This document shows, piece after piece, positions 3,232-35,841 of a stretch of 64,000 nt of DNA; the stretch's first letter is position 1; each line of letters opens with the position of its first letter. The stretch lies in NCBI GenBank assembly GCA_020891255.1, contig BQFW01000007.1:2790001-2854000 (forward strand), given 5' to 3'. The notes under the pieces were generated by a model. The model ran no database searches and was not told the origin of the DNA. It saw only the letters and a list, made by a program, of their open reading frames with translations. Source of the stretch: Entomortierella parvispora E1425. Lineage: Eukaryota; Fungi; Mortierellomycota. The translations under genes and the position numbers were made by a program.

Positions 3232-3405
3232 ATGCCAGAAGAATCTCCATCACTAAGCGAACTACTCGTGCGACGAAAAATATAAAAAGAACAATGAAAA
3301 CGACAACGAGAGCGAGAGATGGCGGCGAGAGAAAAGGAGAGTGAGAACCGGCGGTTCGAGGAAATCCTCTGTGGACTGAGACAATGGCCTCATCAAGGAC
3401 AATAG
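3232..3405 (+). pseudogene. Degenerate copy of charged small-ORF family A
   Basis: MPEESPSLSELLVRRKI*KEQ*KRQREREMAAREKESENRRFEEILCGLRQWPHQGQ*; two in-frame stops at 3283 and 3295. Confidence 0.65.
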
Positions 3406-4108
3406 CAATGGACCATACTAAATAAAACCCTGTTTTTTTTCTCTTCCTTGTTTCCCTAGTGCTGTTCTGCTTCTTGAAAACTCGGCTTTAAGTGCAGATC
3501 CAGATCTCTTACAGATTCCCACGTCATTGGCCATTATCCCTTTCCCTTCTTCTTGCCTTGCTCGTGCACTGTTCCCGTTTCTTCCTTTTTATACTGCAAT
3601 GTCCGTCAACACCCTCTCAAAGCTGCCTTTTGTTCTAGCCGCTTAATTATACAAATCGGAGAAAGGACCTTCTTCCTTTTGACATCAACTGAAGAGATAG
3701 GTGGTAGCACAAGGAGACAGAATGAGGGCACTCAGAAAATCACCATTTTTTTAATTCGTCTGCTCTCTCCTTCCCTCTCTTCTCTTCTTTTGGCTTTGCA
3801 TCCCTGGCCACGAGATTTCCGAGTTAGCAATGCACGAGATGTGGGAAGAGGAGGACGATTCAAAGTTAGACTCTGAGCAAGTTATATCCATATCGTTGAA
3901 CTTGCTACTGTGAGTGCCGTCTGCCCTCTTTACATTTCCGTTCCACTATTTTCTCTCCTCGGATCTGCGTCAAGAGAGAACTGAGGTGGTCCACAGAATA
4001 AGCACGCTTTAATAAAGGCCAGGGGGCGACAGCCGGCCATTATAGACCCAATGAAATTGAAGTGTCGTTGGATGCAGAGTCGATACTGATGAAGGAAAGG
4101 AGCCAAGT

Positions 4109-6691
4109 AGTCGTTACTGGATAAGATCCGAGGTGTTGCGTTGACGGAGCATGACCTTGAGGCAATGTTGAACTCGTTTGTCCACCTTGTGCTCGGGCTG
4201 ATCCATGCGCCACCGACGTTCACTGCCCATTGAACCTATTGAACCATAATCCGCCGGGTAGAGCCTGTTTTTGACAGGGGCGTTCCAGGTCAGATCATGC
4301 ACTGTGATCGTGGGTAGTTTCTGTTGAGCTGGTTTCTGGCATGGCCAGCGTGTTTTTTGAATTCATTTCTGAATTAGCGAGAGGTTCCGTGGATCCAGAG
4401 TCAGATCACAGTGCACCTCCAAGAGCGGTCCTTGTCCTGAAGAGTGGTCCCTGTACTGACTTGCCTCCAATTCCTGTTTATGAACAACCATGGACATGTT
4501 GGCTACGAGTGGGCAAACTCGCCTTGATCAACTTGTAGTATGATATGATAAGAGACCGTGGGCCTCACTGAGTCGACTCCATGCCATAATGTCGCAGAAT
4601 GGGACCTCTCAAAACCAAGGCATCAGGTGGATGAATGTTGCTCGCTCACTCGCTGGCCATTTGCTCCGGTCGCATGGATGCATTGGTCAGAGCTGCCCCG
4701 GGTGCCATGTCTGGTCTGAGCGATGACACATTGTCCTGTCGGTCGAATGAGAAGCTGTTCCTGTTCTGGTGAATGGATGATTGGTCAAACGATGCTCAGG
4801 CCATGCGACCCTGCGATTTCCCCGAACGCACGCACGCGCCACACACACGCGCACGCGCTCGCAGCATTGCCCCAAGCCACCAGCTCCATGCTTTTTTTTT
4901 GACTTTTTGACTGTTTTTGCACCTCGATTGAAATCATTTTACCAAATTCCACCCTGGTACCGCAAATGTCTTTTGGCCGCAGAATACGCCTATAAATACA
5001 TAAGAGGAGACATAGAATGGTATGGAGTGTCCTATTGGGCCGTAGGGATTGCGGTTGGATGGGGGAGGCTGTATCAGCCAGGCCTGCGTGATCAGCGGGC
5101 GCAACGCCAAAAGCTGCCGGGACGCCGGTAAGCACCCAAGACACGTTTTTGTGTTTTTTTTGCAAGGCGAGCTTCCCCTTTTTCGTGTGTGTGGCCCCTT
5201 CTCCCTCCCGGCCTCCACTCCACCCCAGGACCATCGTTGGCATCCCTTTTGTCTCTTGTCTGCACTTGCATGTCGCCCCTCATTGTTCATTGTCCTTCTC
5301 ATGCATTCTTGTTCTTCTCATCCTTGTCCCTCACATGCGTCCTTGTCCCTCACATGCGTCCTTGTCCCCTCACATGCGTCCTTGTCCCCTCACATGCGTC
5401 CTTGTCCCTCTCATGCATTCCATTCCTGCACAACTTGAGTCTCCGTCTCCTGTTTCCTCGTCTGCACGCCACCAATCCAGTCTGAGATCAGATCGACTCT
5501 CTTTACACTGGCCTCCAACTTTTGTGTCTTCTCGTGCCTTGGTCATCTTGGCTCCAGAGCTCTAGCCACAACGGAATGTTCTTTTGCCAAGTCCCCAAAT
5601 CCGTGTGTTAGCGCGTCTTTTAAAGGATCGGATGAGGATGATGGCCCAGATCCTCGCCTGGCACCTGTTGACATTACGACAATTTCGGACCGGACTTTCA
5701 AGCTTGCTGGCCTGTGCCCACTGTCCAACACGTCCTTGGGCGAGACTTGTGAGCCTGAACTAATGTCCTGTTCCCACTCTAATAACCCGAGTCAAAGTCC
5801 AATCAGGTCGTCGGGTGCCTCAGCTTCGACACCAACACTCACAAGATGATGCTGTCACTCGTCAATGACAAGGTACGAGACCTTTGCCGAGAGACTGGTG
5901 GATTCCCAACCCAGTCCCCCAGCAACAACTAACCTCCTTGTTTGGTCGCTCTGACACGCTTACAGATCCGGTCCTTCTTGTCTTCAAGGACACCGTTCTC
6001 GCTCTCAGGAAAGCCTAGTGTGACCCCATCAGTAGAAGTGGACTGTGTGGTGTAGCCACTTCAAGGACTGCTCTTAGCGGCCTCCACTTCTACAATAGTA
6101 CGTTTTCAAGGATGGGAGCGACATGGGCTGGGTACACTGTTCCGACGGCCAACACCTTATCAGGACAGCTGTCGACAAAGGGAAAGCACCGATCTGTCAG
6201 TTGTCTGGAACTGCAAATAGCCTTGAGAACGATCTAGTCTCTGGACATCAAGGCCAAAGGGAGGGGCAAGATGGTTGGGATCGACAACCACCCTGCCCTA
6301 CGTAGACGAAATATGGGGCACACGTTCATCCTCCTCCAAATGGACCTGGCAAGTCCCTTCTGGGAGTACCATTCTTTGGCGACAGGAGCCAAGATCACAG
6401 CAGCTTTCATACGATCCAAGGACAACACGATGGACCTTCTGTCACACGATTTTGCGACTCCAGACTGGGTGGTCGCCCCAAATCGCATGTCATTTCAGTG
6501 GATCGACTAACAATATGTACGGTACAGGTCGGATGAACAACCAGCCCCCGATATTTGTAGCGTAGGATCACCGGGTAGTAACTACGGACACACACTCGAT
6601 CCTACGGAAACACGAGGGGATCTTCACCTACCCTTCCCAACCGTTGATATCGATAGGCCGCCGAAGATACAACGGGGAAGCACAGCAGGTA
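4109..6691. repeat. Right arm of the ~2.58 kb inverted repeat
   Basis: Reverse complement of 219-2799. Three differences seen: 245/6665 substitution, A7 vs T8 (1749/5154), and CGT vs GCAT (2226/4680). Confidence 0.97.
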
Positions 6692-7327
6692 TGTTGGTCG
6701 ACTCGGCATGAGAGTCCAAGTCTTGGAATTCAACTCTCCCACCGGATCGCCAACAATGCTGGTCAATTTCATTGAGTCTATCATGCCCAACTGCGGACGG
6801 AGGAGCAGAGGAGCAGAGACAACCAGAAAGACAGAGAGGGCAGACGAGCGGAGGGGCAGACGAGCACAGAAGACAGAGGGGCAGACAAGTAATAAACTGG
6901 CTTTATTAAGTAGAGTACGGAAATGATCCAGGGCGATGGATGCGCTCCGCCGGATGGGATGCTCGCGTTGAACGGCGCGGTCTTGTCTTTGCCACCACTC
7001 AGCGTCGGCCCCCCTGGTATCGCTCTTACTGCTGCCGACGCCTTCGCTTCTCTCTTTGTCTTCACTGTTGTTGCAGTGGCAGCGTCAAGAGCTATGTCTA
7101 CGCCAATAGAGAGGGTCACTTGCCACTGCCAGAATCAAGAGGCTCCCTTGGGGCTCTAATCAAGGCAGCCAACCCATCCTCTACGCTTGATTAGTCTACG
7201 TTTTCCAGAATCGCTTGACCGTGTCTTCCACAATCGACACAATCCACTTAAACATCCACGCCAAACTCCTGGACTCTTTGATAAGGAGTTCCTCTGCTGA
7301 CATTGTTGATTGTAGTAAGGCCAATTC

Positions 7328-7358
<31 letters not shown>

Positions 7359-7880
7359 TGGCGGCGATCTGAACACCCATCACGCAAAAACATCGATCCA
7401 CTCTGTCCAGAGACTCAGACTATGACCTAATGCCATTTCTCTTTTGATGCTCGTACCATGCCAGAGCTCTCCTTCCTCGCTCTGATTCATCTTTTGCCAT
7501 TCCATTCCATTCATATTCATAGAAGATGCAGTTTATATTGATGTCGAAAGGGAGGGGTCCTTTTCTTCAATTTATATGAGTAAAATGGCTACAACAAAAA
7601 ATAGCTTCGACGTGGGTATTGACGAATACGGGATGGCGTCCACACACGCGACCTTGGAAACCATCACAAGAGACAGATGATATGGTGATGGGAGAAAGGA
7701 AGAAAAGGAAACAGAGCCCCATGGCCAAATATCTACAAGAAGAAAGAGAAGGTGAAGAAACAATGACGCGGGAGCCTGCAACGGATCCTAAGCTTCGAAC
7801 AGCACTATCAACAAGAAACGGAACAGGAATAGGGAGATGTGGAAGGCGGTCGAGCAAACATTTTGTTGAAGTGGTTGTTG

Positions 7881-8072
7881 CTATTTCTTGGGCCACTGAC
7901 CCAACCCTCGCAGGATGGCCTCCTCGAGGCGCTGGTTCTCCTCGTCCTCCTCCCATTCTACCCTCCGTCGCTGTCGTCGTTGTTCTCGTTCTTGTTGTCG
8001 ACGCGATCTTCGCAGCTCCCACAACTCCCTCAGCTCTTGGGGGGTGAGGTCTTTGGGCTGTTGAGAAGACAT
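7881..8072 (-). CDS. Intact 63-aa Arg/Glu/Gln-rich small protein, family A (unknown function)
   Basis: ATG-started ORF MSSQQPKDLTPQELRELWELRRSRRQQEREQRRQRRRVEWEEDEENQRLEEAILRGLGQWPKK. The same frame and an MSS start recur in paralogues. Confidence 0.55.
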   Translation of the reverse strand: MSSQQPKDLTPQELRELWELRRSRRQQEREQRRQRRRVEWEEDEENQRLEEAILRGLGQWPKK

Positions 8073-8305
8073 TCCGTTGTTGATTTGAGAAGAACGGCGA
8101 AGGACAAGCTCGCCTTAAATGGCGTGGTGTCTTCTTGCTGTCATAGAAACAGCTGTTCTTGTTTTTGCCGCTATCGACTTGCAGGCTCTCCTCGTCCTCC
8201 TCCCTTTTGAGGGTGCTTTTGAAAAGGACGATGTGTACATGCGAACTGGAGATCTATTGTACAAGACCAAGGACCAGTACTGGTACTTTGCCGATCGTCC
8301 CTCTC

Positions 8306-8418
8306 TCACTGTCCTCGTGCTTCTCGTTCAGCTTGTCGTCGCAATCTTCGCTGCTCGCGCAGCTTCAGCAGTTCTTGGCGGATGAGCTCTAGATTCTTGG
8401 GGGTAGCTCTGACGACAT
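8306..8418 (-). pseudogene. Degenerate family-A small ORF
   Basis: MSSEL start, then a frameshifted ELIRQELLKLREQRRLRRQAEREARGQ*; preceded by the family motif at 8466-8516. Confidence 0.55.
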
Positions 8419-8998
8419 GGTACTGGATACCGGATATAGGGGTCGTCAAAAGCAAGGCGTAGGGAAAGCTCGCCCTTGAAGGGAACGATTTCGGTTCTGC
8501 CCTCGTTCTTGCAATGATGGTGGCTTCTGTGGAGACGTGGTAGCAAAAAAAAAAAAAAAAAAAGATATCAGGCAGTGTGGCGTCAAGGGCGCACGTTTAT
8601 CAGGCGGTGACCACCGAAGGGGGCATGATGTATATGAGTCAGCAAGCAAAATGGATACCAGGCAGTGCCACTGATGGGGACAGAGTGTCAATTGACGCAA
8701 TGAATAGATCCATCCAGCGCTCTGTTGCAGAGCTCTAGATGATGTTTCACTTTATTGTCCGACGGCGCCTTCCACTCCACTACCATATTGAACAGAGCCA
8801 CATAGTCTTTTTTGCTTGGCCAGGTTATACCCCAGCTGACACAATCTAATTGAACGTCCACGTTAATCCCAGACTCTTTTATAGGAAGGAGCCAGGTAGG
8901 CCTCACCCCTCATGACAATAAACAAGAGATGCAATGATGTTGAGAAGGAGCACTCTTTATACTGATACTGGAAGGTAAAACAAGATGGGTAAATGGTA

Positions 8999-11410
8999 TC
9001 ATGGAGAATGGGTCTGGCCAGCTGCCATGGCAGGCAACGAGGAGGAGGAAGAGCTCGTATGCATACGCCCTTCATGAACGTTGATTCCAGAGGCTAAGGT
9101 ATCACTACCCCCCGTGACAGCAGTTTTGGAGGCCTTTGGATCCTCTAGATTGCTATACTGGACAAGATCTGGATCCTCCTCATCCACCAAGATGTTATAA
9201 AGACCTGACTGGCTCCCGGAGGGGGACAACGCCATGCTATCCAACCTTGAAGGATGACTGCCCTGTTGTCTCGCATGGTGATGTCGATGACCGATCCGGG
9301 GCCCATGTCGCCTATGCGACCGATGCGTGCCAAATACACGATCCAGAACCCGGTCCAAGCATCGAAATTTGCCCGTGTAATAGAGCCATTGACAGAAGAT
9401 GGAAAGATCAAACATCAATGTTCCCGACGATCCTAGCACATATGGCACAGCCTCCCGGAGAAATTTCTGACGCGTTGTCGGATCTACGGCCTCGCGCGAG
9501 TTGAGGATCGAGAGAGTATACGAAAGATTACCCATGGCCGCCCAAAAAAACATAAGGATCGACAATCCCTGGACAGACTTGCGTTTGTACTGGGAAAGAA
9601 AAGAGGTGGTTCGGTGGCAAAGAGTCAGCACAGCAAACAACAAAACAACAAAACAACAAAGAGGCCAAAAAAAAAAAAAAATGGGGACACATACATTTTT
9701 CCAGAGCTGAGGCATCCGACTGGATAAATAAAAGACTGTGCAGACCCATGCAAAAATCCTTCCTAATTGCACAATATTCACATCTGTAGGCTCGTCCGTG
9801 ATCATCTCATCCTGCGAAAGATCTGCTCTTGCAAAAACACGGCCTTGGACAGGGAAGGACCCTGTCAATGATCCTGATCCAAAATGTGCCTCCAAGGTCG
9901 AGTCTGAAGGCCAGGTTTGACGCAGTGTGAAGAGCATTACCCCAAAGAGCACGATAGATGTGCTATCGAAGGACAAAAAGATAGAGAATCGGAAAATGGT
10001 GAGACGGATGTCGCGGCTATTTCCCGTACAACAGTATCTTTCACGAAATAAAGAGGTATACCTTCTCCTATGTGAAATATCAGAAGCGGTCGTCGCCCGT
10101 CTCGTCCTGGGCCTGTGCATCAATGGTGATAGGTTTTCAGCCTGCTCCAAATCACTGCCCAGTTCTGCGCCTCCATCCAGAACTAAATCATGATGCAAAG
10201 GAGGAATTGCCGTCGCTGTCGTCGAAGCAGCAGGCGCTGCCGTTACTGTTGCCGAAGTCACTCTTCTTGAATGGCGGGGTCGACCCGACAGTGAGGGTGC
10301 GGGATGAAGCGAATGGCGGCGGTGATCTGTTTCCGAAATCTCGGGCAAGTCCCCGACCATGATATCGGGCATGTCGTGCTGAACTAGTCGTTTATAACGG
10401 TCCCGACGGGAGTAGTATATCCACTGACCAAAAAGGATGATGTCTGCGATACAAAAGTAAATGGCGAGATACATCTATTGGGGGTAAGAGAAGGCGAACA
10501 GCGTGATCAATCAGTTGTTGAGAGCGACATAAGAGGCATTGTAGTTCCCCAGCTAGAAGGCAAGGAATCCTGATGGCATCCCTACCTGAAATGGGAGTTG
10601 GTGGGTCAAAATACATCCGATCAGATTGCTAATGTCGCCTGGAGGGGCAAGAAGCAAAAGGTTCAGACCAGAAAGGCAGGTTAGAACATCTGGTACTTTG
10701 AGAGGACATATTAGACCCTGCCAAGAAACCTCCTCCTACCCAGCAGCCAATTGATCAGAAATGGTAGTGAGAGGGACTCTATATCCATACGATACGGAAG
10801 AAGCAACAATTTACATTAGTATAATAAGGCCATGGGTCCCCAAGGGTGCATTGATCCTCCTCTGGAATCAAACCCACCTGCTGAGCCCAGCTTGAAATTT
10901 TCAATGATCTGGCTACAAGGCAAAAACAAAAAAAGGTCCTGTCAGCCATCGTGTGTGTAACGCACTCCCTTTCGTCACCTCTGTTCCTGTCCTCCTTACG
11001 GTATCTGAGCATTCAACCAGCAGAGAATTGATACATATCCTAGAGAATATTGGCCAAAGGAAGAAAGAGAGCGGGTCAGGATTCAACCTTGTTTGTTGCT
11101 GCAGCGAAACAAAAAAAAAAAGAAGTCCGCTCGAAGAAGAAAAAAGAGAACCTGGACCGATTCGTCAGTCAAGGAGAAAAGAATGAAGGGATGCCTTACC
11201 AAGGAGCAGACTCATGGCCTGCTGCTGTGTCGTTACACATTCATTAAACAGAGTCTAATGGGTTCAGAAAGAGAAAAGCACATTCATTTACGGTCAGCTG
11301 TCTTGACAAGGTAAAATGAGACCAAGAAAGAGGCGAACAAATGAGGTCCTTGTTCATGGGAGAAAAGCTACCTTGATCCAGCCAATGCATTCCGCAGGTG
11401 ACCCTTCCAT
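8999..11410 (-). CDS. PQ-loop vacuolar/lysosomal amino-acid transporter (Ypq1/PQLC2 family), multi-exon
   Basis: Spliced exons give MEGSPAECIGWIK|TLFNECVTTQQQAMSLLLG|YVSILCWLNAQIP|QIIENFKLGSA|ESLSLPFLINWLLG|DISNLIGCILTHQLPFQ|MYLAIYFC. A second loop follows: FYLSSRMPQLWKN|YKRKSVQGLSILMFFWAAMGNLSY. Confidence 0.93.
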
Positions 11411-12113
11411 GACATTCGCGAGTAGAGAGCTTTTGTTGCCTTATTTGTTTGTTCGAGCTGAAAGGAGACAAAGGAACAAAGAGAAAAGAGAGGCAAGAAA
11501 GAAAAAAAAGTCCGGGAGAAGAAGGGACTGGATATTTGCCAGCCAATGAAGGTGAGAGTGACTGAAATAGCGCTGCGTGCCTCGGAGTGCCAATACGAAC
11601 AGGACGGAGGATGAAGGTCGGAGGAAAAGAGTAGGAGTAGTGGAGAGAAAGAAGAGGAGGTCAGGTAAGTGAAGAGAAAGGGGCGGAGGGAAGAAGCAGA
11701 AGGGAAGACCCACTGCAAACAGGACAAAAGATCTGACGCGCGTGGTGTGCGCGTGCGTGGTTTGCGCATGGTCTGATGCGCCCTTGGTTGGTTGCTTGGG
11801 TTGCTTGGTTGGTTGCACACGGGTGTGTGTAGGGAGAACCTCCTTTCTCTTGCCCAAAAACGCGCCTCTGTCAAAAACTTCTTAGTCCCTGTCCCCATCT
11901 GCTGCTCCTGTTTGTCTAGTATTCTCAAGACTCTCCCTTCTCAATGATGTTGGATGGAGAACACAAACGACTGAGTTCCACCAAAGCTCACAATGGCGTT
12001 CTCTCTTAGTTCACTTCATTGGACTTTTTGTTCTTTTCTTTTTCTACTTCTCTCTCTCTCTCTCTCTCTCTCTTTTTTCTCACCTCCCCTGTCCTCACCT
12101 CCCCTTTTGAAGT

Positions 12114-12900
12114 ATGCAATCCACGATCCAGTGCATTGCTACCGCCTGCCAGAGCATCCAGAGGTCTGATCCTTACTTTTGGTTCGCGGCTGCCGCCACA
12201 GCCTTCAACCGTCTGTTTTGGAAGGTATTCGCACGCTTTGGTAAAGACGACAGTCATCTTTCCACTCTCTGCCTCTCTCTTTCTGTGCCAACAAGCTGTC
12301 TGTTAACTGTTAACTGACATGGTATTCCTCGTTAACAGTGTCTCCACTAGAGCGTCGCACCAAGAAGATCACGCAAATTGTCGGTGGTAATCCCTACCAT
12401 GGTTCTATGCCCTGACGACCATCTTTTGGCATTGTTGGGTTATACCGCGACTACATATAAAGGAGCCAGGCGAGCCAGGCTTCATCGTCATGTTCGATTG
12501 TGCCACTGTTTCCTTACCAACAAGCAGCAACAACATCCTCTCCAAACACCTCATAACTACAGGAACGCCATGGACTTCCAACCGCAGGCAGACTGCATGG
12601 GTGCACTGTTCATCCACGCAACGGCAGCGGTCTTCTCCACGTTGGAGAGCGTCTTTCTTTCGTCCTTTTGGGGATTGAGCGTAGTTGGCTCGTTCTTTGA
12701 CAAAAAAAAAGAGGCCGGTGTATGGATCAAGATGGTGATCCAATGCCTAAATAATAGGCCTCTTGTGGGAAGACCTTCGTCTGAACTTTTCGTCTTTTTT
12801 TTAGGCGATTACTTTGGGATCATTCCCGTTTAACGTGAGTGACCATCCTATGTATTCTGGCATCGTGATGATGGACTTGGGCGCCGCGACGACTTGGTGA
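12114..12900 (+). pseudogene. OPI3: Decayed phospholipid N-methyltransferase (OPI3/PEMT-like)
   Basis: SDPYFWFAAAATAFNRLFWKVFARF|ERRTKKITQIVGGNPYHG, GIVGLYRDYI, VFLSSFWGL and GDYFGII..PFNVSDHPMY resemble OPI3 blocks. In-frame TGA and TAA, frameshifts and an apparent deletion are present. Confidence 0.75.
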
Positions 12901-13696
12901 AGAGAAAACAATAGAAGGATGGATGAATCTGCAGGACAAGCCCTCGTTTTATGAGGATTTACAAATAATGACTGGAGGGAGCATAGACTGCAGGAGGGAG
13001 GGAACACAAGGGGTGCATCAATTGGGAACGTGCAAGAAACGCGTCAAGATTTGACCTGGAAGTCTCTTTTCCAGAGTGAGTCTTGCACTCAAAAGAGCCG
13101 CCGATGGCGTGATGGGAAGCGGACCATGGCGACCGGAAACAACAAAAGAATCTTGAGCACCAGGGGGAGCAGGAGCAGGAGGAGGAGAGAGGGGCTTTTT
13201 CTTGACTCATTCCCGTTGATTTTCTTTTTCTTTTCAGGTCAAGAGTCTGGCAGGAATCGAATTACACTACGCCTCGAAGAGTAAGGAAGGGGAGAGAAGC
13301 AGCGAGGGAAAGAAAGAGTGTCAACCTGTCAACCTGTCAAACTCTGTTGCAGCTGGCTTAGTAAACGTCGGACATCCGATTTACAATAGAAACACCCTAC
13401 AGGCCCTTCACAGCTACAAAGCTACAATCTATGCCCAGCAGATGCAGATTCGTGCAGCCTTGGAAGGCAAGGAGGGCCAAGACAGCAAGAGGGAGCAGTT
13501 GTTCATCGTCGTTCTCTCTCGTTCTCTTTCATATGCACCCTCTCAAATAAAGACAGATCCACAAAAGGACAAAAGAGAGTGCAAAGGGGTATGCCAAAGA
13601 ATTTATTCTATTATTGTTTCTGTCGAATGAGAGGATTTGAATGCGAATGTTGGAAAGGTGTTTGTTCTGGCCCAAGAAGGGGAAGGGAGAAAGGAT

Positions 13697-14826: not shown

Positions 14827-14829
<3 letters not shown>

Positions 14830-14904: not shown

Positions 14905-14907
<3 letters not shown>

Positions 14908-23381: not shown

Positions 23382-26300
23382 CTACGTGGCAAACATGGTC
23401 CTGTAGAACTCTGCCACGCTCTCTTGTGGTGCTGGCTGTGATGCATGTTGTTGTTGACTTCCTTGACCCTCATCCTCGTTCACACGATAAAGCGGCTGCT
23501 GTTGATGGTTATGAAGTACCTCCTGTATGTACCTGGCCCTGGCTACACTGGGCTCCGAGAAGTTCTCCATCATCAGTCTACAAGCGCGATCCGCCGAGAT
23601 GGCCGTGTTCCGGACCAAGCTGCCCAAAGAATGACGACTGACCAACATTCCGTCTGCCAGAGGTCCAATCATCAATGGGTTCGCCGCCAATCGCACGGAG
23701 CCCGCTGTCGCCGTCGTGATACCTTGAGGGACCACGATCCGAATCCAGAACAACCCGCCTGCAGAGTCGCCTCCGCCGCCCAAGGGGTGGATCAACAGGA
23801 ACACCATCAGACTCTGATCATTCGACAAGAGCAAAGGCAACAAGTTCAACATCCGCTCCCGATCCTCGACCCAAACCACTGCGACGCGATCCTGCAGCGT
23901 CACCGACCGGAATTGGTCCACCAGTTGATGATCCAACATGCGAGGGATTTCCGCTGACGAATATCCTTCTGATGATGGAGACGGCGCCGGGAAGGTGGAT
24001 CGCATGAGGTAAGGGACATGGAAGATGACTTCGTTCTTTCGATCCGCGAAGTAAGGTGTCGTGTGGCAAAGGGTCGAGTTGAGATGGCCTGTGTATCCAG
24101 AATGTGTCTCGAGTTGAATGGGCCAGCCGAGACAGTCGAGGAATCGAGAAAAGTCTTTGGGGAGTCCTTGTGGAGATCCATGAATGAGTTCATCATAACT
24201 AACATCGCCCGACTGTGCAAAGTAGACGCTGATCCCAATACAGTCACGTCTAGAGAGGTAGATTGAGAAAAGGCAATGAATGCATTAGGGATCAAAAGCC
24301 GGCCGGTATAGACGGCATGGAGACATAGACGGCATAGAGGCGCACAAGAGGCGAAATGATCCAAGAACTAGAACTTACTCTTTGAGATCATCCAGGAACT
24401 GTAGCTCTGCCAAGAGTCGATCTGACAAGTGCAAGGGCACGATTCGTGACCTGTTTTCAAGTGAAAGGTATCCCATCTGTGCCATCAAGATCCTAAACAC
24501 ACTAGACCTAGAGCATCAAAAGGAATCAAGAAACCCGTTAGTAAGCCATCTTGGTGCCTGATTTTTTTCTCCTCTCCAGGACAAAACTTACGTCGGTGTC
24601 TGCATCGCAATTTGCCGTCGCTGCTTCTGCAACTGAGGAGGCATTGGCTCGGGTATACTTTCTCCTTCATCAAATGCCTGCTTTGTTGTGATCAAGTCCT
24701 CGGGCTCCGCGACTTTACTGCCTCCAAAGCTGTCCTCATCACGCCCTGTGTTGGTCTCATCATCATCGTTCTCAGACGCTGGTGGTCGAACGTAGCGTCT
24801 AAGTCCAATTCGAGTTTCGTCCGCAGCTTCAACGAGCAGCACACGATGTTCCGGAACCCCTATAGTACTAACGCCACCAATGCCACTGCCACTGTAACTT
24901 TCGGAATCCTCGCCGTCTTCTTGTAGGTCTGCACTTTCCATGTCCGCTGTAGCCTTGGAAGAAGCCAAAGACCTCCGACTCTGAGAGGCTGAGATGCTAG
25001 CCATCCTGTACTGCTGTTGCTGCAGCTGATGTTGTTGCTCCAAGGAACTGACCCGAACCTTCCACGAATTTCGCCCACTTGCATCTCGCATGGTCACGAC
25101 CACAAACGGACCTCGCTCATCTACATATCCTCCCCCCGATGGAGTTCCGGAAAGAGCCGCTGGGGGTGATTCGCAACAACCCACAATGATCCTTCTATCC
25201 AGCAAGAAATATCGTACCGGTCCCGCAGTGTCACTGTCTGATCTTGACCGATGCGGCAACGGTGGTGGACCATTTCCTCCGAGAGAGTTGTAAAGCTGAC
25301 CATCGCCACCTCCCTCCATGGAAGTTGTTCTCTCCTTCCGAATCGCCTCGAGGTGCAATCGATTAATGCCCAGGTCGTTCCAAAGCGTTGACATTCGACT
25401 AGGTCCAATGTCATCCGTCCAAACCGGAAAGTTGCCCAGTTGATTTGAGAACAACGTCATGGCCTTCTCGGCCGCCTGTTGAATAAGACTCAGATCCTGT
25501 CTCAACGTCGCAAACGGGATTTTGACCTGATGACCTGACATGGATGAACTAGCCGAGCGGTTTTTACGGTTCTCTCTCTCCTTTTTGGATTCCTGTGTCA
25601 AAATCTTGATCGGCCCTGGGTATTTGTTATTCACCTGGAATAGCTTTGCAGCCGAACTAGATGGTTTTCCAAGAGAGAGTGGAGCCCCCACAGCTGAGAT
25701 CATGGCGTTCCCGGCAGCTCCGCCTCCCCATCGACGCTTTTCCTGTTGGGGCTTTGGAGGGACGATAGAGGCTTCGTATTCTTCCACTTTTTCAACAATG
25801 TTGATACCAGCCGAGATTGAGCTCAATACAGCAAGATGGCAATCCTGATCACCCACAATCCATTGCCCTGTCAGGATCCATTCCAGCATACACTCATACG
25901 CCCTTACCACCAAAGAATACGTCGTTGGGAGGAGGCTGTGATTAGCCAGCAGCGTGTCCACATATCGGCAAAGAGCCAGGACCAGTTCTCTTGCGCAACT
26001 CTAAGGAGTCAAGTGAAAGATATGAGACTTACTGCCCTTGTTCCGATCATGATTTGGTCCCAAAGTACTATCGGCCTACCTTGCTATCTCGTCGAACATA
26101 CTCGTACAAGCCAGTGCAGCCGACGAGAACATCGAATGCACAGAGAGCAACATCCACGGGGACCTGAACCGTCACAATCTATAGCAAGAATCTCCATTAG
26201 AAACTGATCGACTTCCAAATGTCCAACGATGAGTTCATTCAACTGCAGCTTGGAGTCTTTACCTTTTCCTGAATTGTCTTGACAACGACGCCCACTAATC

Positions 26301-28848
26301 CAGGACAAAAGGCTACATCCTCATATACGTAAATTTCAATCAGATGGAGCAGATATCGCAGGTTAAAGGACGAAGTCTCTGTCTCCAGACAGTTGAGCAG
26401 CATCTCCAGGATGTAGTATTTGAGCTAAAGGAAAAAGCAAGGCAATCGTTGATGAGTGACATCCTTTCTGTACAGAGATCCCGTTCTTGGTCATCTATCC
26501 ATACCGTTGTAAATCGCTTGGATGCAGGCACAGATCCATCTGTGGGTGTGTCAGCGGTATACAGGACGCGGATCTAATCAAAAATTGGATAAAAATAGGA
26601 TTGGTTTCCAGTCACCCTTTTTTTCTCTCCACAATATAATTTCTTACCAATTGAGCAAGAATCTCTTTGTCTTCACGCGTACTGCTGCCGCCGTTGCCGC
26701 CGCTTCCAGGTCCTCCTTTTGGACTCTCGACGCCCATATTGGCCAACTTGGACAAGCCTTCATTCCAGCCCTCCTTCAGTTCCACTTTCTCAAAATGATT
26801 GGGCAAGCAGATGATACATCCCGCAACCTTGAGGGCCGCCAAATGTAAGTCCTCTAGGATTTGTTTTTGTTTCTCCAGACTCAAGTATGCGCCCATAGTT
26901 GTCGTCACCCGAATCTGTCCACTCATCGCCATCCGAATTCCAATCACAAAGTCGGGGACCATCATCCGAACTCCTTCCAGCTCCGTTGTAAACAGTTCCG
27001 CAGATTGTGCCAAGATGGTCGGCAAACTCGTCTCACTCCTCAAACCGATCGACAATGCCTCATAAAATCGTTCTGTATAAATCCGAAGAAAAGGTCTTGT
27101 GGCCGGCTGAGGCTTACTAAAGATCCTGCACAACACTCCAAAGGCCGAGGCTTGGGCCTCGTGATAGCTGTCCGGTGGATGATGCGGGTTAAAAGTCTGC
27201 CAATGGGATGGCGTCGAGGAAGTGCCACTGCTGTCGTTGGAGGTGTCTGGGATGGGTAAGGACGAGACTTCAAACAACCATGCCCCAAACATGTGCAAGA
27301 TTGTATTGCCATCTGGTGAACTGGGTTTCTTTTCCGGTGCTGGGTTCTTTGATGATGAAGAAGGCGGCGAAGACGAGGCCTGGTTCGAAAGGGAGAGCGA
27401 GGACGACGAGAAAATATCCGTTGGGGTTGAAGGCAGAGGCGGGGATCCAGGTAGGGTCGATGACTGTGCAGATGACGCTCCCACCAACAAAAAAGTCTCT
27501 ACCATCCTTCCAATACCATTCACAGCCGCCAGACAGTTGGGCGGACTGAGCTGGGCAGGACTCTTGAGTAAATAAATCATCCTGTGCCAAGCATAGAGAG
27601 CAAAATCCGCCTGCAGATCCAGCCCAATATTGTAACCGCCCACTGCCAAGTTCACGACATCCGTGCCCTGTCCAGGTCCATAGAGTAATCGAACGACCCT
27701 CTGGCAGAGTCCAAGGACAGTGGCTGCCCATTGGTGAAGGACTGGTATCCGATGAGTCCATCCACTGAAACAGTGCTTGAGAATATCCCACATCTGGACT
27801 TCCCGGGTATTCGATCGAAGCCAAAGCTCAAATAGGACTCTGAGCAAATGTTCACAAAGGTCATCGCTCATCTTTTGCTGTTCCGGCATGAGCATCATGG
27901 TCGATGTGGAGCGCTGATGGGACGGTTGCTCTCGCAGTAAACTGTCCGTGATTCCTAGAATTACTTTGAGAAGCACTTGCCATGTCTGCGTCGAGAATGA
28001 GTTCCCGAGTTGCCGTCCCGCCATCGTAAGCACGGTCAAGACCTTTTTGCAGAGTTCAATATGACGTTGGATCAAGATACCGATGGGGACATGATGAGAC
28101 GCAGTACCGCCTGACGATCCTGTGAGCGTAGTGGTTTGATGGCGAAGATGGTGTGTTGCGAGATGTGGAGAGGAGGGCGTAGGCAAGGTCGTTCTGACTT
28201 GGAAGAGCAGCGAATAGTGGTGAAAGATGGTCTAGAAAGCAAAGGAGTCATGTCAGCATAACGAAAATGGCTCTTCTTTTTTTTAAAAAAAATCTCAATT
28301 GCTCACTTGGCTCAGTGGACAAAGCACGCAAACAACAAAAAACGCATATTCCATATTCTCCGTGATAAAAAAAGTCTGGAGAGGAGGTTTTTTCTTCCGC
28401 TGACCTGGTATAAGAGCTGCTCGTCCTCGGTCCCCACAGCTTGGTGAAAGGCCATGGGTCGCATCTGGGGCTCAAAGAGCCACTGTGAGTACAGCTGCGT
28501 GGTCTCTTGGGCAATCGACAGCTCCTCAAGCGGCAGTGCAAAGCCCTGGCCCAGGACCTCCATGGCCCAGCGCATGTGCGCCATGGACGAGAGCAGAGTC
28601 AGGTCTGAGGACACAAGCAAAGTCGAGGCCACCTCAGTAATTAGGGTCTTGCGGACCTGGAGCGGGAACCTAGCCAGGACATTGGAGACTGCGTATGTAA
28701 TCGGCATTGGTTCGTGAGAAGGTGAGAATGGCAGGCAGGCATTGAAACAAAGAACAAACACGGCAGTAAGGCAGCAAGTAGCATCTCTGTGTCTCTTACC
28801 TGGATCATGCTGGAGCAGGCCCAGCTGGGCAATCCAGTCCAGGAACAT
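23382..28848 (-). CDS. RALGAPB: Ral GTPase-activating protein beta subunit-like protein, multi-exon
   Basis: MRWAMEVLGQGFALP, LCEHLLRVLFELWL, GNTILHMFGAWLFE, AFGVLCRIF and C-terminal GPLADGMLVSRHSLGSLVRNT...EFYRTMF match RALGAPB blocks from recall, in the right order. Confidence 0.82.
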
Positions 28849-29313
28849 GGTCAGGCACGCTTGCCGTCGGGTCGATCGAGCACAGGGTCGCTGCTAGCGT
28901 TCGCTGCGTGTCTATCTCCAGAGATGGGTAGTGCAGGGAAGGAGAAACGAATTGGCGGCAGGCGCTGTACGGTTATGCACAGCGGAGAGAGTCAAGATGC
29001 ACGCGTAGTTGGATGAGAGAGGCGGAGGGAGAAGCAGGGTGGGAAGAGAGAGTGAGAGAGAGAAAGGAAACAGTTATGGTTGATGCAGGTAGAGAGAGGG
29101 AAAAAGGGCCAGCAAGGATCAGGATGAACAGGCAATGAATGGATGGTGGGAAGAGAAAGGTGTCCATGAGACCATGCGTCGACAACGTGTGGGATGAGCC
29201 TGTTTGTGAAGATTATGAGTTTAATTTTACACAGGATAACTAATCAGTTTAGTTTATAGACATTTTTTATTCTGGAAGTGCACTGTCGACTGTTCGCGTT
29301 GCTGTTGAACCAT

Positions 29314-31116
29314 CTATCTCCGCATGCGTGACAGGTCTTTGGGGCCAGGAACGTTGCCGGCGATCGTGTTGTTGACGTTCTGTTCCTCCAATGGGTCCAG
29401 AGTTGGATCGCGGGCGTGATACCCAAGGGACTCAGGATGCTCCAGCAGCAAGCTCTTCATCACCTCTGGATTTGCCGTCTGGTGGAACACGGACCGACCT
29501 GCAAGTCCGGCATCGAGTGCCGATCCAAACACCTTTTGAGCTTCTATGGAGCCTGTCGGCGCAGAAGCAGCAGCAGATCTAGCTGCGTCATGAGCCATGT
29601 GGTGGGCCATGTGGTGTTCGAGTCCCTCCAGGTAAATGTTTTGATCTCCTGCCTCTTCGGCTCCACCGAACGCGACTCGGGCGGCCGCCTCCTTTTCACC
29701 CGAAGAGTGACTAAACAAAGAGTCGCTCGTTGTTCCTGCAGGAGGCCGTTGCTGAATCTTGTCTATGACTACATCCTTGATCAGCCCCGCAACCTCAATA
29801 ACCGATCCTGCCAACCCTGCTTTTTCAGGTGAAATCTCATGAGACCAACGACGTCCACCCTTTCCTCCCTGAATCAGAGTGCCAGATGAACTTATGTGTG
29901 CGGAGGCTCCGGGATGCGAAATAGAGTTGTCCTCCTCATCACCTAGGCGAGTGGTTGATTCGGTAAGATCCGAGGACTCGTAAAGAATAGAGCTCTTAGC
30001 AAGTGCCCTCGTGGCGTCCTCGGATGCAGATCTAATATGTTCTCTGTGAGAAACATCGCCACTGAAAGGTGTCTTCAATCCAGTGGGGATCGCAGTTGGG
30101 AACATGGTTCCCCCGCTCCAGCGCTGCGCTCCTTCAGAACTGCCGCTGCTGCTGCTCTGCATGCTGCTGTTTCCAGATGCTCCAGAGACACCCTTCAAGG
30201 TCGAATGGTGAATATCGGCCATCCTGCCTTTGAATCCAGGCATGAGCTCAGGTAAGACCGAGGGCTTGTCATGCTCGAGTTCATGACCAGAAGACGTCAT
30301 CTCAGAACGGATGGCATCGTTGAAAGGCAGCTGGTTGGAACTCTTGTTGACAAGAGGTTCCCAAGTTGCGCTGGGAAGCGTGGCCGTGGTGCTCAATCCA
30401 ATCATATCGCCACCATCATCCTGAGTCTTTCCACCTTCCTTGAAAGCTCCAGAGGTAACAACAGGGGACTTGTTCGCTCCGCTATGAGGCTTTGATCCGC
30501 CATTGGCATCCGATCTGGCTTCGGAGGCAGGATGGGGGGGATTAGTCGCACCTGACCCAGCCTTGGAGAGAGGATGAGGAGCATCAGTCGATGTACTCTT
30601 TGGCTTTGAGCCCCCTCTTTCACCTGCAGTTGCTTTTTGCTGATCAGGCACTTTGAGCTTTGCATCTGAACCAGAGGAGGGTGTCGATGTAGTTTTAGAA
30701 GATGGGTGACCTGAAGATCCCTTTGCTAGGCTGTTTGCATGGTTGTTGCTGTTATCTCTTTTGTCTGATCCACTAGCGTTGCTTGAGGGTTTGTTGTTTT
30801 TGTTGCTTTCTTCCTTTCCACCAGGGACTTCATTCTTGCTGCGATCTGAAGTAGAAGAGCGGCGAGAAGACGACGAAGGGGCAGAAGGGGGGTTGACAGG
30901 AAGCTTCTTAGGGTCCAGAGGCACCCTCTCTTCCTGGTTCAGGATCTCGTCGACGACATCATCGTGGGCGATGTGGGCTGCTGCGTCGTCGTGAGAATGC
31001 GGGAAGGGCTCTTGATAATGAGCGAGTCGCGTCTGCTCGAGCGAGTCGATGACGGGGTGACCCTTGTCATCGGAGAGATGGGTGGGGTTGTTGAAGTTAT
31101 CCTTGGCGTTGCTCAT
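29314..31116 (-). CDS. Single-exon ~600-aa Ser/Gly-rich, probably disordered hypothetical protein
   Basis: Uninterrupted 617-codon ORF; likely start MSNAKD at 31116; no recognisable domain. Confidence 0.8.
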   Translation of the reverse strand: MSNAKDNFNNPTHLSDDKGHPVIDSLEQTRLAHYQEPFPHSHDDAAAHIAHDDVVDEILNQEERVPLDPKKLPVNPPSAPSSSSRRSSTSDRSKNEVPGGKEESNKNNKPSSNASGSDKRDNSNNHANSLAKGSSGHPSSKTTSTPSSGSDAKLKVPDQQKATAGERGGSKPKSTSTDAPHPLSKAGSGATNPPHPASEARSDANGGSKPHSGANKSPVVTSGAFKEGGKTQDDGGDMIGLSTTATLPSATWEPLVNKSSNQLPFNDAIRSEMTSSGHELEHDKPSVLPELMPGFKGRMADIHHSTLKGVSGASGNSSMQSSSSGSSEGAQRWSGGTMFPTAIPTGLKTPFSGDVSHREHIRSASEDATRALAKSSILYESSDLTESTTRLGDEEDNSISHPGASAHISSSGTLIQGGKGGRRWSHEISPEKAGLAGSVIEVAGLIKDVVIDKIQQRPPAGTTSDSLFSHSSGEKEAAARVAFGGAEEAGDQNIYLEGLEHHMAHHMAHDAARSAAASAPTGSIEAQKVFGSALDAGLAGRSVFHQTANPEVMKSLLLEHPESLGYHARDPTLDPLEEQNVNNTIAGNVPGPKDLSRMRR

Positions 31117-31288
31117 GGTGAGGGAAAAGCAAAGGGTGATTGAGAAAAAGTGAAGAACGAAGAACAAAAAAGAAAAAAAAAGGTCTCACTCGCACTTTCA
31201 TGATGATGATTGAAGGAACGTGACCTGTGATGTCTTTCCCAAATCGGACCCCCAATTCGCGTTCAAAAGAGTCCCCCCTCTGCACCCC

Positions 31289-31340
31289 GAGCCGTGGGTC
31301 ATTTCGCGAAGACAGAGCCGTGGGTCATTTCGCGAAGACA
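31289..31340 (+). repeat. Exact 26-bp tandem duplication GAGCCGTGGGTCATTTCGCGAAGACA x2
   Basis: Read directly from the sequence. Confidence 0.95.
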
Positions 31341-31543
31341 GACCCCGCTCGTTCTTATAGCGCGAGATTGACAACCGAACATGCGTCACTTGAGCCACAC
31401 CACTCAATATTCAACTCGCCACCATTTAACGTATCAGTTCAGTGTCATTGTGCCTGCCCATGCAAGAACGAGGGCAGAAGCAAAGTCGTCCCATTCAAGG
31501 GCGAGCTTGACTTACGCCTTCGTATCGACAACTATCCAGTACT

Positions 31544-31738
31544 ATGTCGTCAGAATAAACCCCCAATCATGAGCTCGTTCCTCAAGAACTGCTAGAGCTG
31601 CGCGAATTGAGACTGCGACGACAAACAGAACGAGAACAACGACGACAACAGCAAGAGGGGGAGGCAAGGGAGGATAAGGACGATAAGGACGAGAACCGGC
31701 GGCTCGAAGAGGCGATCCTCCGAGGGCTGGGCCAATGA
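31544..31738 (+). pseudogene. Family-A small ORF with a premature stop
   Basis: MSSE*TPNHELVPQELLELRELRLRRQTEREQRRQQQEGEAREDKDDKDENRRLEEAILRGLGQ*. Confidence 0.65.
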
Positions 31739-31871
31739 TGCCAGCAGCGAGAGCGACACCGGCCGGTCGATAGAGGCAAAGACAAGAATAGTAGCTGTTT
31801 CCATGACAGCAACACCCCTCGCCATTTAAGGCGAGCCTGCCCTACGCCTTCTTATCAACATCAATAATAGA

Positions 31872-32071
31872 ACGTCTTATCAACAGCCCCTGAAAGACCA
31901 AGCAGCCCCCGCCCCCAAGAGCTGCAGGTGCGCGACATGCAAAAATTGCGAAGACAACAAGAACGAAAACAACGACGACGGCGACGAAGGGAGGCATGGT
32001 AGGAGGAAAGAGAGAACCGACGCCTCGAGGAGGAGATCCTCCGGGAGTTGGGCGGGTGGCCCAAGCAGTAG
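31872..32071 (+). pseudogene. Family-A small ORF with ATG>ACG, a frameshift and an internal stop
   Basis: PQELQVRDMQKLRRQQERKQRRRRRREAW*EERENRRLEEEILRELGGWPKQ*. Confidence 0.62.
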
Positions 32072-33330
32072 CAACAACCACTTCAACAAAATGTTTGCTC
32101 GACCGCCTTCCATACCTTCCTATTGCTGTTCCGTTTCTTGTTGATAGTGCTGTTTGAAGCCTAGGATCCGTTGCAGGCTCCCGCGTCATTGTTTCTTCAC
32201 CTTCTCTTTCTTCTTGTAGATAATAGGCCATGGGGCTCTGTTTCCTTTTCCTCCTTTCTCCCATCACCATATCATCTGTCTCTTGTGATGGTTTCCAAGG
32301 TCGCGTGTGTGGACGCCATCCCGTGTTCATCAATACCCAGGTCAAAGCTACTTCCTCCCTTTCGACATCAACATAAACTGCATCTATTAAGAATATAAAT
32401 GGAGTGGCAAGAGATGAACCAGAGCGGGAAAGGAGAGCTCTGGCATGGTACGAGCATCAAAAGAGAAATGGCATTGGGTCATAGTCCGATTCTCTGGGCA
32501 GAGTGGATCGTTGTTTTTGCAAGATGGGTGGTAGCACAGTGAACGATGGTGCTCAGATCGCTGCCACCTTTTTTTTTTTTTTTTTTTTTTTGAATTCGCC
32601 CTACTAGAACCAACAATGTCAGTAGAGGAACTCCTTACCAAAGAGTCCAGGGAGTTGGCGTGGATGTTCAAGTGGATTGTCTCGATTGGGGGAAAACACG
32701 GTCAAGCGATTCTAGAAAACGCAATCGGCTAATCAAGCGTAGTCAAGGCCTAACTAGAATTGCGTAGAGGATGGGTTGGCTGCCTCGACTAGAGCCCCGA
32801 GGGAGCCTCTTGATTCTGGCAGTGGCAAGTGACCCTGTCTCTATTGGCATAGACATAGCTCTTGATGCTCCCACTGCAACAACACTGAAGACAAAGAGAG
32901 AAGCGAAGGCGTCGGTAGCAGCAAGAACGATACCGGGAGAGACGACGCTGAGTAGTGGCAAAGACAAGACCACGCCGTTCAACGCGAGCATTCCATCCGG
33001 CGGAGCACATCCATCGCCTCGGATCATTTCCGTACTCTACTTAAAGCCCGGTTTATTAATATAACTTGTCTGCCCTCTGTCTCCCCCCTCTGCCCGCCTG
33101 CCCTCTCTGTCCTTCTGCCTTCTCTTTGCTCCTCTGTTCCTCTGTTTTCTCTCTCTGCTGTAGATTTCTGATAACATTGTCCGAATCTTCGCATCCGAGC
33201 CAAGAAGAAACTGAGGTAGTCCACAGAATAGGGGCCAGGGGGCGACAGTTGGCCATGATAGACCCAATGAAATTGAAGCGTCGTTGGATGTAGAGTCGAT
33301 GCTGATGAAGGAAAGGAGCCAAGTAGTCGT

Positions 33331-35240
33331 TTACTGGATAAGATTCAAGGAGTTAAGTTCACGGAGCTTGACCTTGAGGCATTGTTGAACTCGTTTGTCC
33401 ACCTTGTCCTCAGGCTGATCCACGCGCCACCAACTTTCACTGCTCACTCAACCATAATCCGCCGGGTAGAGCTTTTCTTTGAGAGGGATGTTCCAGGGCA
33501 GACTGGGCACTCTGATCGCGTGTGGCTGCTGTTGAGTTCGATTTTCTGCACAACCGGCGTGTTTTTGAGGTCCCATGGATAGACAGAGATGTGGATCTAG
33601 GGTCAGATCGGAGTGCACCTCCAAGAGCGGCCGTTGTCCAGAGTTGTCTCCAATCCCTTTTTATGAACAACCAAGGTCATTTCATGGGTGTTAGCAAAAT
33701 TCGCCCTGTTCGACCTGGCAGTTGATAAGGAACTGAAGCAGAACAGGACCTCTCGGACCAACACACAGGTCGATGTATGTGGGCTCACTCACTCACTCGC
33801 TGGCCATTTGCCCGGTCGCATGGATGCAAAGGTCAGACCTGTTCCAGGTGCCATGTCTGGTCTGAGCAATGACCATTGTCCTGTTCGGCCGAATGAAAAG
33901 TTGTTCATGTTCTGGTGAATGGATGATTGGTCAAATCATGCTCAGACCATGCGACCCTGCGATTTCCCCCAACGCACGCACGCGCCACACACTCGCGCAC
34001 GCGCACGCAGCATTGCCCCAAGCCACCAGCTCCATGCTTTTTTTTGACTTTTTGACTGTTTTTGCACCTCGATTGAAATCATTTTACCAAATTCCACCCT
34101 GGTACCGCAAATGTCTTTTGGCCGCAGAATACGCCTATAAATACATAAGAGGAGACATAGAAAGGTAACAGATGGTGAAAAAGGACTCGGTGGGGGAGGC
34201 TGTATCAGCCAGGCCTGAGTGATCAGCGGGCGCAACATCGATGTCTACCGGGACGCTGGTAGTCTGCCTTTCTTTTGTTTTGCACGGCAAGGGTCCCTTT
34301 TTCGTGTTTGTGGCCCCTGCGGAGTGGAGTGGAGTGGAGTGGAGGCCGGGAGGGACCAGGCTCAAGGACCATCCATCGTTGGCATCCCTCCTGTCTCTTG
34401 TCTGCACTTGCATGACGTTCCTCATTGTTCATTGTCCTTCTCATGCATTCTTGCTCTTCTCATCCTTGTCCCTCTCATGCGTCCTTGTCCCTCTCATGCG
34501 TCCTTGTCCCTCACATGCATCCCTGTCCCTCTCATGCATTCCATTCTTGCACAACTTGAGTCTCCGTCAACTGTTGCCTTATCTGCACGCCACCAATCCG
34601 GCCCGCCCTGCCAAGAGCGACTCCCAAAACACGGACCTGCGACTTTCGCGCATTTTTGTGCCTCGATCGTCTTGATGCAAGTCCCCAAATCTACGTCTTG
34701 GCTCTTTTTTCAAAGAAGAGGACGAGAAGATGAAGGCCCGGATCATCGCCTGGCACCCGACAACAGCATGACTTCCTTCAGAACGGACTTCCAAGTGACT
34801 GGTCTGTGCCCATGTACATCGGGTCCTCGAGCGAAACTTGAGAGCCTGAAAACCAACACGGGTCATCGGGCGCGCTTCGTTATCAAAAGTCGGGCGCAGG
34901 ACTCTTCAAGGACCAGGTATGTGGCCTTTGCTCAGACAACAGCAGTACCTTTTGTCCCTCCGACGCGTTTACAAACTCAGTCTTTCTTGTCTTCAAGGAC
35001 AACGTCCTCACTTTCGGGAAAGTCTAGAGTGACCCAATCAAGAGGTGCAATCGATCTTTGCAGTGGTGGTACAACCGCATCAAGAACTCGGCAGTTTTCA
35101 TCTCTCCAACAGCCGGAGATGCTTCTTACCACATCATCTTTTCCCTTGCCATGCTTTCCAACCTCAAGACCGCCCCACTCGGTGATACTAGGCACCTGAC
35201 ATACATCATATCCCCATCAGATCAGTGCTTGATACCACAC
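33331..35240 (-). pseudogene. Decayed gene B paralogue
   Basis: Ends in LPWNIPLKEKLYPADYG*VSSESWWRVDQPEDKVDKRVQQCLKVKLRELNSLNLIQ*. Contains VTLDFPESEDVVLEDKKD, matching VTLGFPESENGVLEDKKD at ~885-940. Confidence 0.5.
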
Positions 35241-35477
35241 CACCTGATATACAATCTGCGTCCATCAGTGCCAACGGCTTGATATACATCCTGGCCCCAT
35301 CAGTTTCCTGACTTACTACACTGCCTGATATAAATACTCCCGTCTTTTTCTTTCTTTTTTGCTCTCTATTCCACCGCAGCCATAGCATCCACTACCATTA
35401 CAAGAATGAGCGTCGTCGTCGCCCTTCAAGGGAGAGCTTTACTGGCTTCATTCGATTCTTAGCCTCCTCATTTCAGC

Positions 35478-35672
35478 ATGCCAGATGAATATCCGTCGTT
35501 CAGCATGCCTGAAGATCCACCGTCGACCATGCCCAAGGACACAACGCAACCAGAAATTCCATCCATGAACTATACGCTCGAAGAAAGGAAGAGGAAAAAG
35601 AAAGAGCAGGAGGAGCTCAACAGCCGATTCGGGACCGAGATCTTCGAGGGTCAAGGTCAGAGACACCAGTAA
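35478..35672 (+). CDS. Intact 64-aa divergent family-A small protein
   Basis: MPDEYPSFSMPEDPPST...EERKRKKKEQEELNSRFGTEIFEGQGQRHQ; preceded by the family motif at 35396-35439. Confidence 0.45.
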   Translation: MPDEYPSFSMPEDPPSTMPKDTTQPEIPSMNYTLEERKRKKKEQEELNSRFGTEIFEGQGQRHQ

Positions 35673-35729
35673 AAGCATAGGAGCAGGGACTCCAATAGAT
35701 TCTTGTTGGCTCGGCCGTCATCCGTCTCC

Positions 35730-35841
35730 TCGCGAAGAACGAAAATCACGACGACAGCGAGGGAGGGAGGCAAGAGAAGGCGAACTCAACAAGCGGCTTG
35801 GGGCCTAGATCCTCGAGGGGCTGGGCCTATGGCACCAGCAG
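35730..35841 (+). pseudogene. Degenerate family-A small ORF remnant
   Basis: REERKSRRQR...ELNKRLGA*ILEGLGLWHQQ. Confidence 0.45.

Follow-up and report, generated by a model that had tools for sequence, protein, structure and literature searches.

In a 64,000-nucleotide stretch of contig 7 of the fungus Entomortierella parvispora E1425 (positions 2,790,001-2,854,000; hereafter the window), we examined a set of related short open reading frames (ORFs) and their remains, which probably represent a family of very small protein-coding genes that is restricted to this species and missing from its annotation. The Nanopore-based genome assembly analysed here comprises 38.9 Mb in 20 contigs; the genome announcement describes 19 nuclear contigs plus the mitochondrion, annotated by AUGUSTUS with RNA sequencing (RNA-seq) hints, and an RNA-seq data set is available for the same strain (DRA013164) (PMC8759367). 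When the whole genome was searched at the protein level and with a profile of the family, nine copies and no other match were identified, namely seven inside the window (c1-c7), one located 0.9 kb before it (c8), and one on contig 5 (c9), eight of the nine being confined to 37 kb of contig 7. The profile matched eight copies with E values of 8e-28 to 8e-7 and the truncated c3 with 0.06, and the homology of the family is far beyond chance. Translation reproduced all seven peptides that an initial sequence-only reading had listed in the window, all of them homologous, and c8 and c9 extend its count of at least seven copies. Only c2 and c8 are intact with all motifs, c6 is open but rearranged, and the other six copies are broken. 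This is the birth-and-death pattern that had been proposed, and it appears to reflect a real small-ORF family that evolved as coding sequence and in which most copies decayed.

The evidence for coding comes from the way in which the copies differ from one another. Retention of the reading frame despite strong nucleotide divergence, as first suggested from inspection, was borne out in two respects, as most indels that separate the lineages have lengths divisible by three and synonymous sites are preferred among the substitutions, yet six of the nine copies are disabled. Ratios of nonsynonymous to synonymous substitution rates (dN/dS), calculated by the Nei-Gojobori method (NG86), were well below 1 in the ORF frame in five comparisons (0.19-0.31 for c2-c4, c4-c5, c8-c6, c1-c9, and c2-c8), compared with 0.6-1.9 in the two other sense frames; the value of 0.58 for c2-c5 is expected if c5 drifts freely. 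Among codons with a single-base difference in recent pairs, 37 of 67 were synonymous in the ORF frame, and 30 of 47 when the pseudogene pair c2-c5 was left out (55-64%). The same statistic reached 22-28% in four other frames and 40% in the wobble-sharing antisense frame (15-27 of ~68), the antisense frames thus showing a weaker synonymous signal than the sense frame, and 23-35% in whichever of the six frames the 5' and 3' flanks were read, with no coding signal there in any frame. When the observed number of transitions and transversions was placed at random in 5000 simulations, 123 identical residues were expected against 149 observed, a number that none of the 5000 simulations reached, and 8.9 new stops were expected against 4 observed. 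Synonymous exchanges are also visible within the end motif (TTG/CTG/CTC for Leu, AGG/CGG/CGC for Arg, and GGT/GGC for Gly). From these substitution patterns we conclude that purifying selection has probably acted on the frame through most of the history of the family.

Several points weigh against a protein-coding family. Taken by itself, the excess of third-position changes in recent pairs is of borderline significance (51/46/70, p=0.056), and it is missing from c2-c5; purine-rich, low-complexity sequence can inflate frame conservation in the oldest comparisons, the alignments of which are uncertain; and the coding comparison is made among copies within the E1425 genome alone. Among old lineages the ORF is no better conserved at the nucleotide level than its flanks, and therefore nucleotide conservation alone is uninformative on coding. 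Codon usage is likewise uninformative for the coding test because the genome has little bias. Moreover, six of the nine copies are broken, the RNA-seq-guided AUGUSTUS annotation (PMC8759367) does not contain these ORFs, as judged from the lack of any such protein in the searched collections, and the basis of the molecular role proposed below is limited to composition and a predicted helix.

Some of these observations would also be expected if the repeated units were non-coding DNA (a decayed piece of a mobile element, or a regulatory or long non-coding RNA unit), with the open frames in c2, c8, and c6 arising as a by-product of purine-rich, trinucleotide-periodic composition. Besides the equally conserved 5' and 3' flanks and the predominance of broken copies, such an origin would fit the fact that c2 and c5 are open in other frames and on the antisense strand as well and that the units sit among dispersed repeats (repeat X, described below, which has copies on contigs 5, 10, 13, 2, and 9). 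Nevertheless, we consider it unlikely, given that the synonymous excess is limited to one ORF frame and absent in all flank frames, that fewer stops have arisen than random substitution predicts, and that no transposon protein domain lies nearby. The occurrence of eight of the nine copies in a single 37-kb region argues against a transposon; a transposable element was rejected on this lack of dispersal and because neither the unit nor the neighbouring ORFs contain a Pfam domain.

The duplicated unit extends beyond the coding frame and spans ~0.7 kb, consisting of a ~130-nt conserved 5' flank, an ORF of 63-67 codons, and a ~400-nt conserved 3' flank. For c2, the conserved non-coding 5' flank lies at 8073-8200 of the window (minus strand) and carries the motif GCAAGAACGAGG...CCATTCAAGGGCGAGCTT ~60-130 nt before the ATG, a motif that also precedes c1, c3, c4, c5, c6, and c9. 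Its conserved non-coding 3' flank of ~400 nt (7480-7880, minus strand) is common, in patches, to the 3' flanks of c1, c5, c7, and c8. Comparison of the 300 nt downstream in c2 and c5 (7597-7896 versus 32354-32056) gave 90-100% identity per 50-nt window, with 86% at the edge, and the ORF and upstream sequence adjoining this tract are 56-86% identical. Such a distribution suggests a tract of gene conversion or, alternatively, a non-coding element under constraint.

Conserved downstream sequence raises the question of whether the ORF might instead belong, as an exon or an upstream ORF, to a longer transcript that is spliced and unannotated, uses the downstream 400 nt, and encodes a larger product. 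The 300 nt after the stop are 95-100% identical between c2 and c5 as against ~75% for the ORF, and acceptor-like TTGTTGTAG / TTACAG sites are conserved downstream. However, the downstream region has no coding signal and contains stops in all frames, donor-like GT sites near the ORF end are not conserved (c8 has none), stop codons occupy equivalent positions in most copies, and AATAAA follows the stop in c1, c7, c8, and c9, all of which makes a longer gene quite improbable. The ORFs are also bounded upstream by in-frame stops located 14 codons before the start in c2 and 7 codons before it in c8, and one is likewise found just upstream in c4, while c1 stays open for ~33 codons upstream. The overlapping antisense ORFs of 142-167 amino acids (aa) and other ORFs in X, Y, and around the units contain no Pfam domain. 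The concern that these ORFs could be exons or antisense shadows of a larger known gene, which had been raised together with the original proposal, found little support.

The prediction that annotation pipelines would miss such genes agrees with the lack of any identical or similar protein in the collections searched. A word-indexed search with c2 against 5.8 billion proteins found no identical or similar protein, and the family profile detected no homologue among 1.84 billion representative proteins. Searches of the ESM Atlas and Pfam and a PDB profile search also gave no homologue, and degenerate-pattern scans of metagenome contigs, viral contigs, and prokaryotic genomes returned no match. 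No Rfam family was detected in the c units or in X, and no tRNA was found.

The individual copies show how far decay has proceeded. In the window, c2 (7881-8072 including the stop codon and 7884-8072 without it, minus strand; self-match E=2e-32) encodes an intact protein of 63 aa, which we refer to as type A (MSS...PQEL...RR-rich...ENQRLEEAILRGLGQWPKK), and c8 (contig 7, 2788936-2789136, minus strand, outside the window) encodes an intact protein of 67 aa. Two intact copies had been suggested within the window, and c2 is indeed one of them, but the other, c6 (35478-35672, plus strand; E=6e-17), is an open 64-aa frame representing the N-terminal part of a c8-type gene that has been rearranged by a 27-bp tandem duplication at the start and by loss of 39 nt (13 codons) from the basic core, with decay of its end motif. 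The 5'-truncated c7 (35728-35841, plus strand; E=4e-8) retains the C-terminal part and the core of the same c8-type gene and contains one TAG; together with c6 it matches one gene, c8, the two parts being separated by ~130 bp that c8 itself lacks. The pseudogene c5 (31872-32071, plus strand; E=4e-12) is the counterpart of c2 and has lost its start (ATG to ACG) and gained an 11-nt insertion and one TAG. Two in-frame stops (TAA and TGA) interrupt c1 (3232-3405, plus strand; E=2e-16), which lies in the spacer of a 2.6-kb palindrome, and c4 (31544-31738, plus strand; E=4e-19), the counterpart of c3, has a TAA at codon 5 and a TGA at the motif Trp. In c3 (8306-8418, minus strand; E=0.06), a 1-nt frameshift occurs in a C5 run after codon 5 and the 3' half, encoding the C-terminal part, is replaced by a 92-bp patch (8207-8298) that shares 98% identity with contig 9 sequence (1727352-1727443) in an exon of a gene for an AMP-binding enzyme and has the appearance of filler DNA left by break repair. 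The copy on contig 5, c9, is frameshifted by deletions of 2 nt and 26 nt. The frameshifts of c3 and c9 fall in homopolymer runs (C5 and A runs) of a Nanopore-based assembly and could be sequencing errors.

Comparison of the sequence with itself revealed how the copies are arranged. A block of 4.5-9.6 kb with the order c-c-Y-X-c occurs twice in inverted orientation and flanks a 23-kb segment. Block 1 runs from ~1.4 kb before the window to position 8513 and includes c8, its order on the minus strand being c3, c2, Y, X reversed, a spacer with c1, X, and c8. Block 2 (31461-35908, plus strand) contains c4, c5, Y', X, c6, and c7 and is 75-95% identical to block 1, with c2/c5, c3/c4, and c8/(c6+c7) as counterparts. 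Block 1 has been further enlarged by a palindrome of repeat X (219-2844 versus 4064-6691; 2.6 kb, 99.2% identical), the 1.2-kb spacer of which holds c1, and a comparison of identities indicates that this palindrome is much younger than the block duplication (99.2% versus 75-95%). Another X copy lies on contig 5 with c9 directly after it, and X as a whole is moderately dispersed. The initial description of the family as tandemly amplified is correct for the pairs c3-c2, c4-c5, and c6-c7, but overstates the case because most copies stem from inverted segmental duplication.

The 23-kb segment between the blocks (8514-31460) contains, among others, the genes for a PQ-loop transporter, COX17, and a kinase, and compared with the gene order of Gryganskiella cystojenkinii, which belongs to a related genus, it is inverted. 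The product of the PQ-loop transporter gene (8999-10474) matches an Entomortierella parvispora protein at NCBI. On the Gryganskiella cystojenkinii contig, the kinase, COX17, and PQ-loop genes are followed directly by the gene for phosphoribosyl pyrophosphate (PRPP) synthetase across an intergenic gap of 290 bp. No c-like ORF and no X or Y sequence was found in the PQ-loop contigs of Gryganskiella and of a closer metagenomic relative (~80% nucleotide identity). This arrangement could be produced by recombination between inverted copies or by an inversion with staggered breaks.

Taken together, the copies probably arose in two stages. Old local duplications would have generated the lineages of the family, of which we count four, since c2/c5, c3/c4, and c8/(c6+c7) pair with one another within one inverted duplication. 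A 4.5-kb block with three units would then have been doubled and placed in inverted orientation at both ends of the 23-kb inversion. Since this doubling, each of two gene types has kept exactly one intact copy (c2 and c8, both in block 1), their block 2 counterparts c5 and c6/c7 have decayed, and the c3/c4 pair, c1, and c9 are broken as well.

The shared motifs noted at the outset are real by alignment. The C-terminal motif N-x-R-[LF]-x3-I-[LF] has invariant Asn, Arg, and Ile residues, and the conserved layout of the proteins comprises, in addition to a short hydrophobic patch, one strongly basic and one acidic block and a C-terminal N-x-R-[LF]-x3-I-[LF]-x-G-x-G-x-W. Both c2 and c8 are ~48% charged with an isoelectric point near 10, and the net charge of c2 per 10 residues is 0, -2, +3, +4, -5, 0, and +2, c8 being more mixed. 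A charged single helix, as had been suggested, is what AlphaFold2 predicts for each protein, that is, one long helix covering residues 11-58 in c2 (predicted local distance difference test score (pLDDT) 87) and residues 13-62 in c8 (pLDDT 82). If a protein product is made, it would be a long charged helix carrying a hydrophobic patch, a basic Arg/Lys block, an acidic block, and a C-terminal contact motif. The Arg/Lys stretch (RRSRRQQEREQRRQRRR in c2 and KERRRKKKEQRKRKRER in c8) resembles a nuclear-targeting or nucleic-acid-binding stretch, and a small nuclear or nucleolar adaptor or a nucleic-acid-associated protein is our best, though doubtful, guess at the role of the product.

A resemblance of the C-terminal part to a ubiquitin-interacting motif (UIM) had been put forward, an idea that fails because the defining Ala and Ser of this motif are not conserved. 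Of the residues defining the UIM (PF02809), the Ala is present only in c2 and c4; in its place the copies have Glu in c5, c6, c8, and c9, whereas c7 has a stop codon there, c1 shows a gap, and c3 lacks the region; the residue four positions after the Ala, which is Ser in a UIM, is Gly or Glu in every copy. No Pfam UIM match was obtained for c2, c8, c6, or the c4 piece (E up to 10; very weak matches may be lost to the HMMER filters).

Repeat X carries a 79-bp upstream promoter element and the TATA box TATAAATA, a combination that also occurs directly upstream of the U6 small nuclear RNA gene (contig 15), the signal recognition particle (SRP) RNA gene (contig 12), and four loci on contig 11. In X the promoter is followed by a hairpin-rich stretch of ~95 nt, nearly identical in four copies (X1, X2, C5, and C10) and ending in a T-run, which we regard as a candidate new family of RNA polymerase III (Pol III) transcripts. 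In the window the promoter and this stretch lie at 4920-5165 (plus strand), with a mirror copy at ~1745-1990 (minus strand) and a further copy at ~34066-34290 (plus strand); additional copies are found on contig 5 (stretch L009, ~4475-4700) and contig 10 (stretch L010, ~5195-5570, minus strand). Derivation of the RNA body from SRP RNA was dropped because local alignments scored no better than shuffles, and a literature search on Pol III promoters of Mortierella yielded nothing useful. Separately, the contig 11 loci with the U6/SRP-type promoter comprise three near-identical ones (~1.77-1.91 Mb; L022, L023, and L025) and one at ~1.40 Mb (L027), and the RNAs downstream of all four have no Rfam match (E up to 0.01).

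The sequence-only reading had interpreted the family as a conflict or effector system, possibly ubiquitin-binding, and one could extend this to a two-part selfish module travelling with X. Birth-and-death turnover in a rearranged, repeat-rich region would suit such a system, as would the candidate Pol III RNA gene in X and the position of a c unit immediately after X in block 2 as well as on contig 5, and ~1.1 kb downstream of X in block 1. However, X occurs without c on contigs 10, 13, and 2, and c2-c5 lie ~1 kb or more from X with Y in between. The UIM features are lacking, the family proteins have no signal-peptide-like N-terminus, toxin domain, defence domain, or homologue, and their substitutions indicate purifying rather than diversifying selection. 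Hence, we judge a conflict system to be very unlikely. An RNA-protein module, in which the Arg-rich helix would bind the X RNA and which would duplicate as a unit and have helped to create the inverted repeats that flipped the 23 kb, is a still more remote prospect; a functional link between c and X receives a low probability because X occurs without c and because ~1 kb of Y separates c2-c5 from X. If such a module exists, it would be a new type of two-part element, selfish or regulatory, in an early-diverging fungus.

A species-restricted family of small protein-coding genes thus remains our preferred interpretation. If c2 and c8 are expressed, they would constitute a new micro-protein family in an early-diverging fungus for which such genes are essentially uncharted. 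The locus also offers a compact view of the birth, copying, and loss of small genes inside segmental duplications at an inversion breakpoint. In practical terms, gene callers, even with RNA-seq hints, skipped ORFs in which purifying selection has left a measurable signature. Without expression of c2 and c8, the locus would provide a cautionary case in which gene relics retain a coding-like signal while they decay.

Comparison with known systems helps to place the family. The likeness to a UIM lies in c2 and c4, where an acidic run is followed by L-E-E-A-I-L-R-G, similar to that motif, in which a hydrophobic residue is separated by two residues from Ala and the latter by three from Ser, but three residues separate the acidic run from the Leu in the c copies. 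ER/K single alpha-helix (SAH) domains consist of alternating E4/K4 runs and serve as spacers inside large proteins. Like them, c2 and c8 are rich in charged residues (~48%) and are predicted by AlphaFold2 to form an isolated, uninterrupted helix of ~48 residues without a hydrophobic core; in contrast, the charges of c2 are segregated into a basic and then an acidic block, hydrophobic motifs flank the charged core, and the c proteins are stand-alone proteins of 63-67 aa. Arg-rich nucleic-acid-binding or nuclear-targeting peptides and the basic regions of basic leucine zipper (bZIP) proteins share with the family a helical Arg/Lys stretch of 15-20 residues followed by a short leucine-rich segment. 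A bZIP assignment itself was rejected, as there is no bZIP signature, heptad zipper, or Pfam match, and the C-terminal hydrophobic residues are spaced 4, 1, 3, and 3 over ~12 residues. The closest parallel is with orphan small-ORF families in segmental duplications. The c units differ from these in carrying unusually conserved non-coding flanks, with an ORF that is no better conserved, and in being known here from sequence alone, but they share with them a very short, unannotated ORF without an outside homologue and a history of local duplication in which most copies decay and one intact copy per type is kept.

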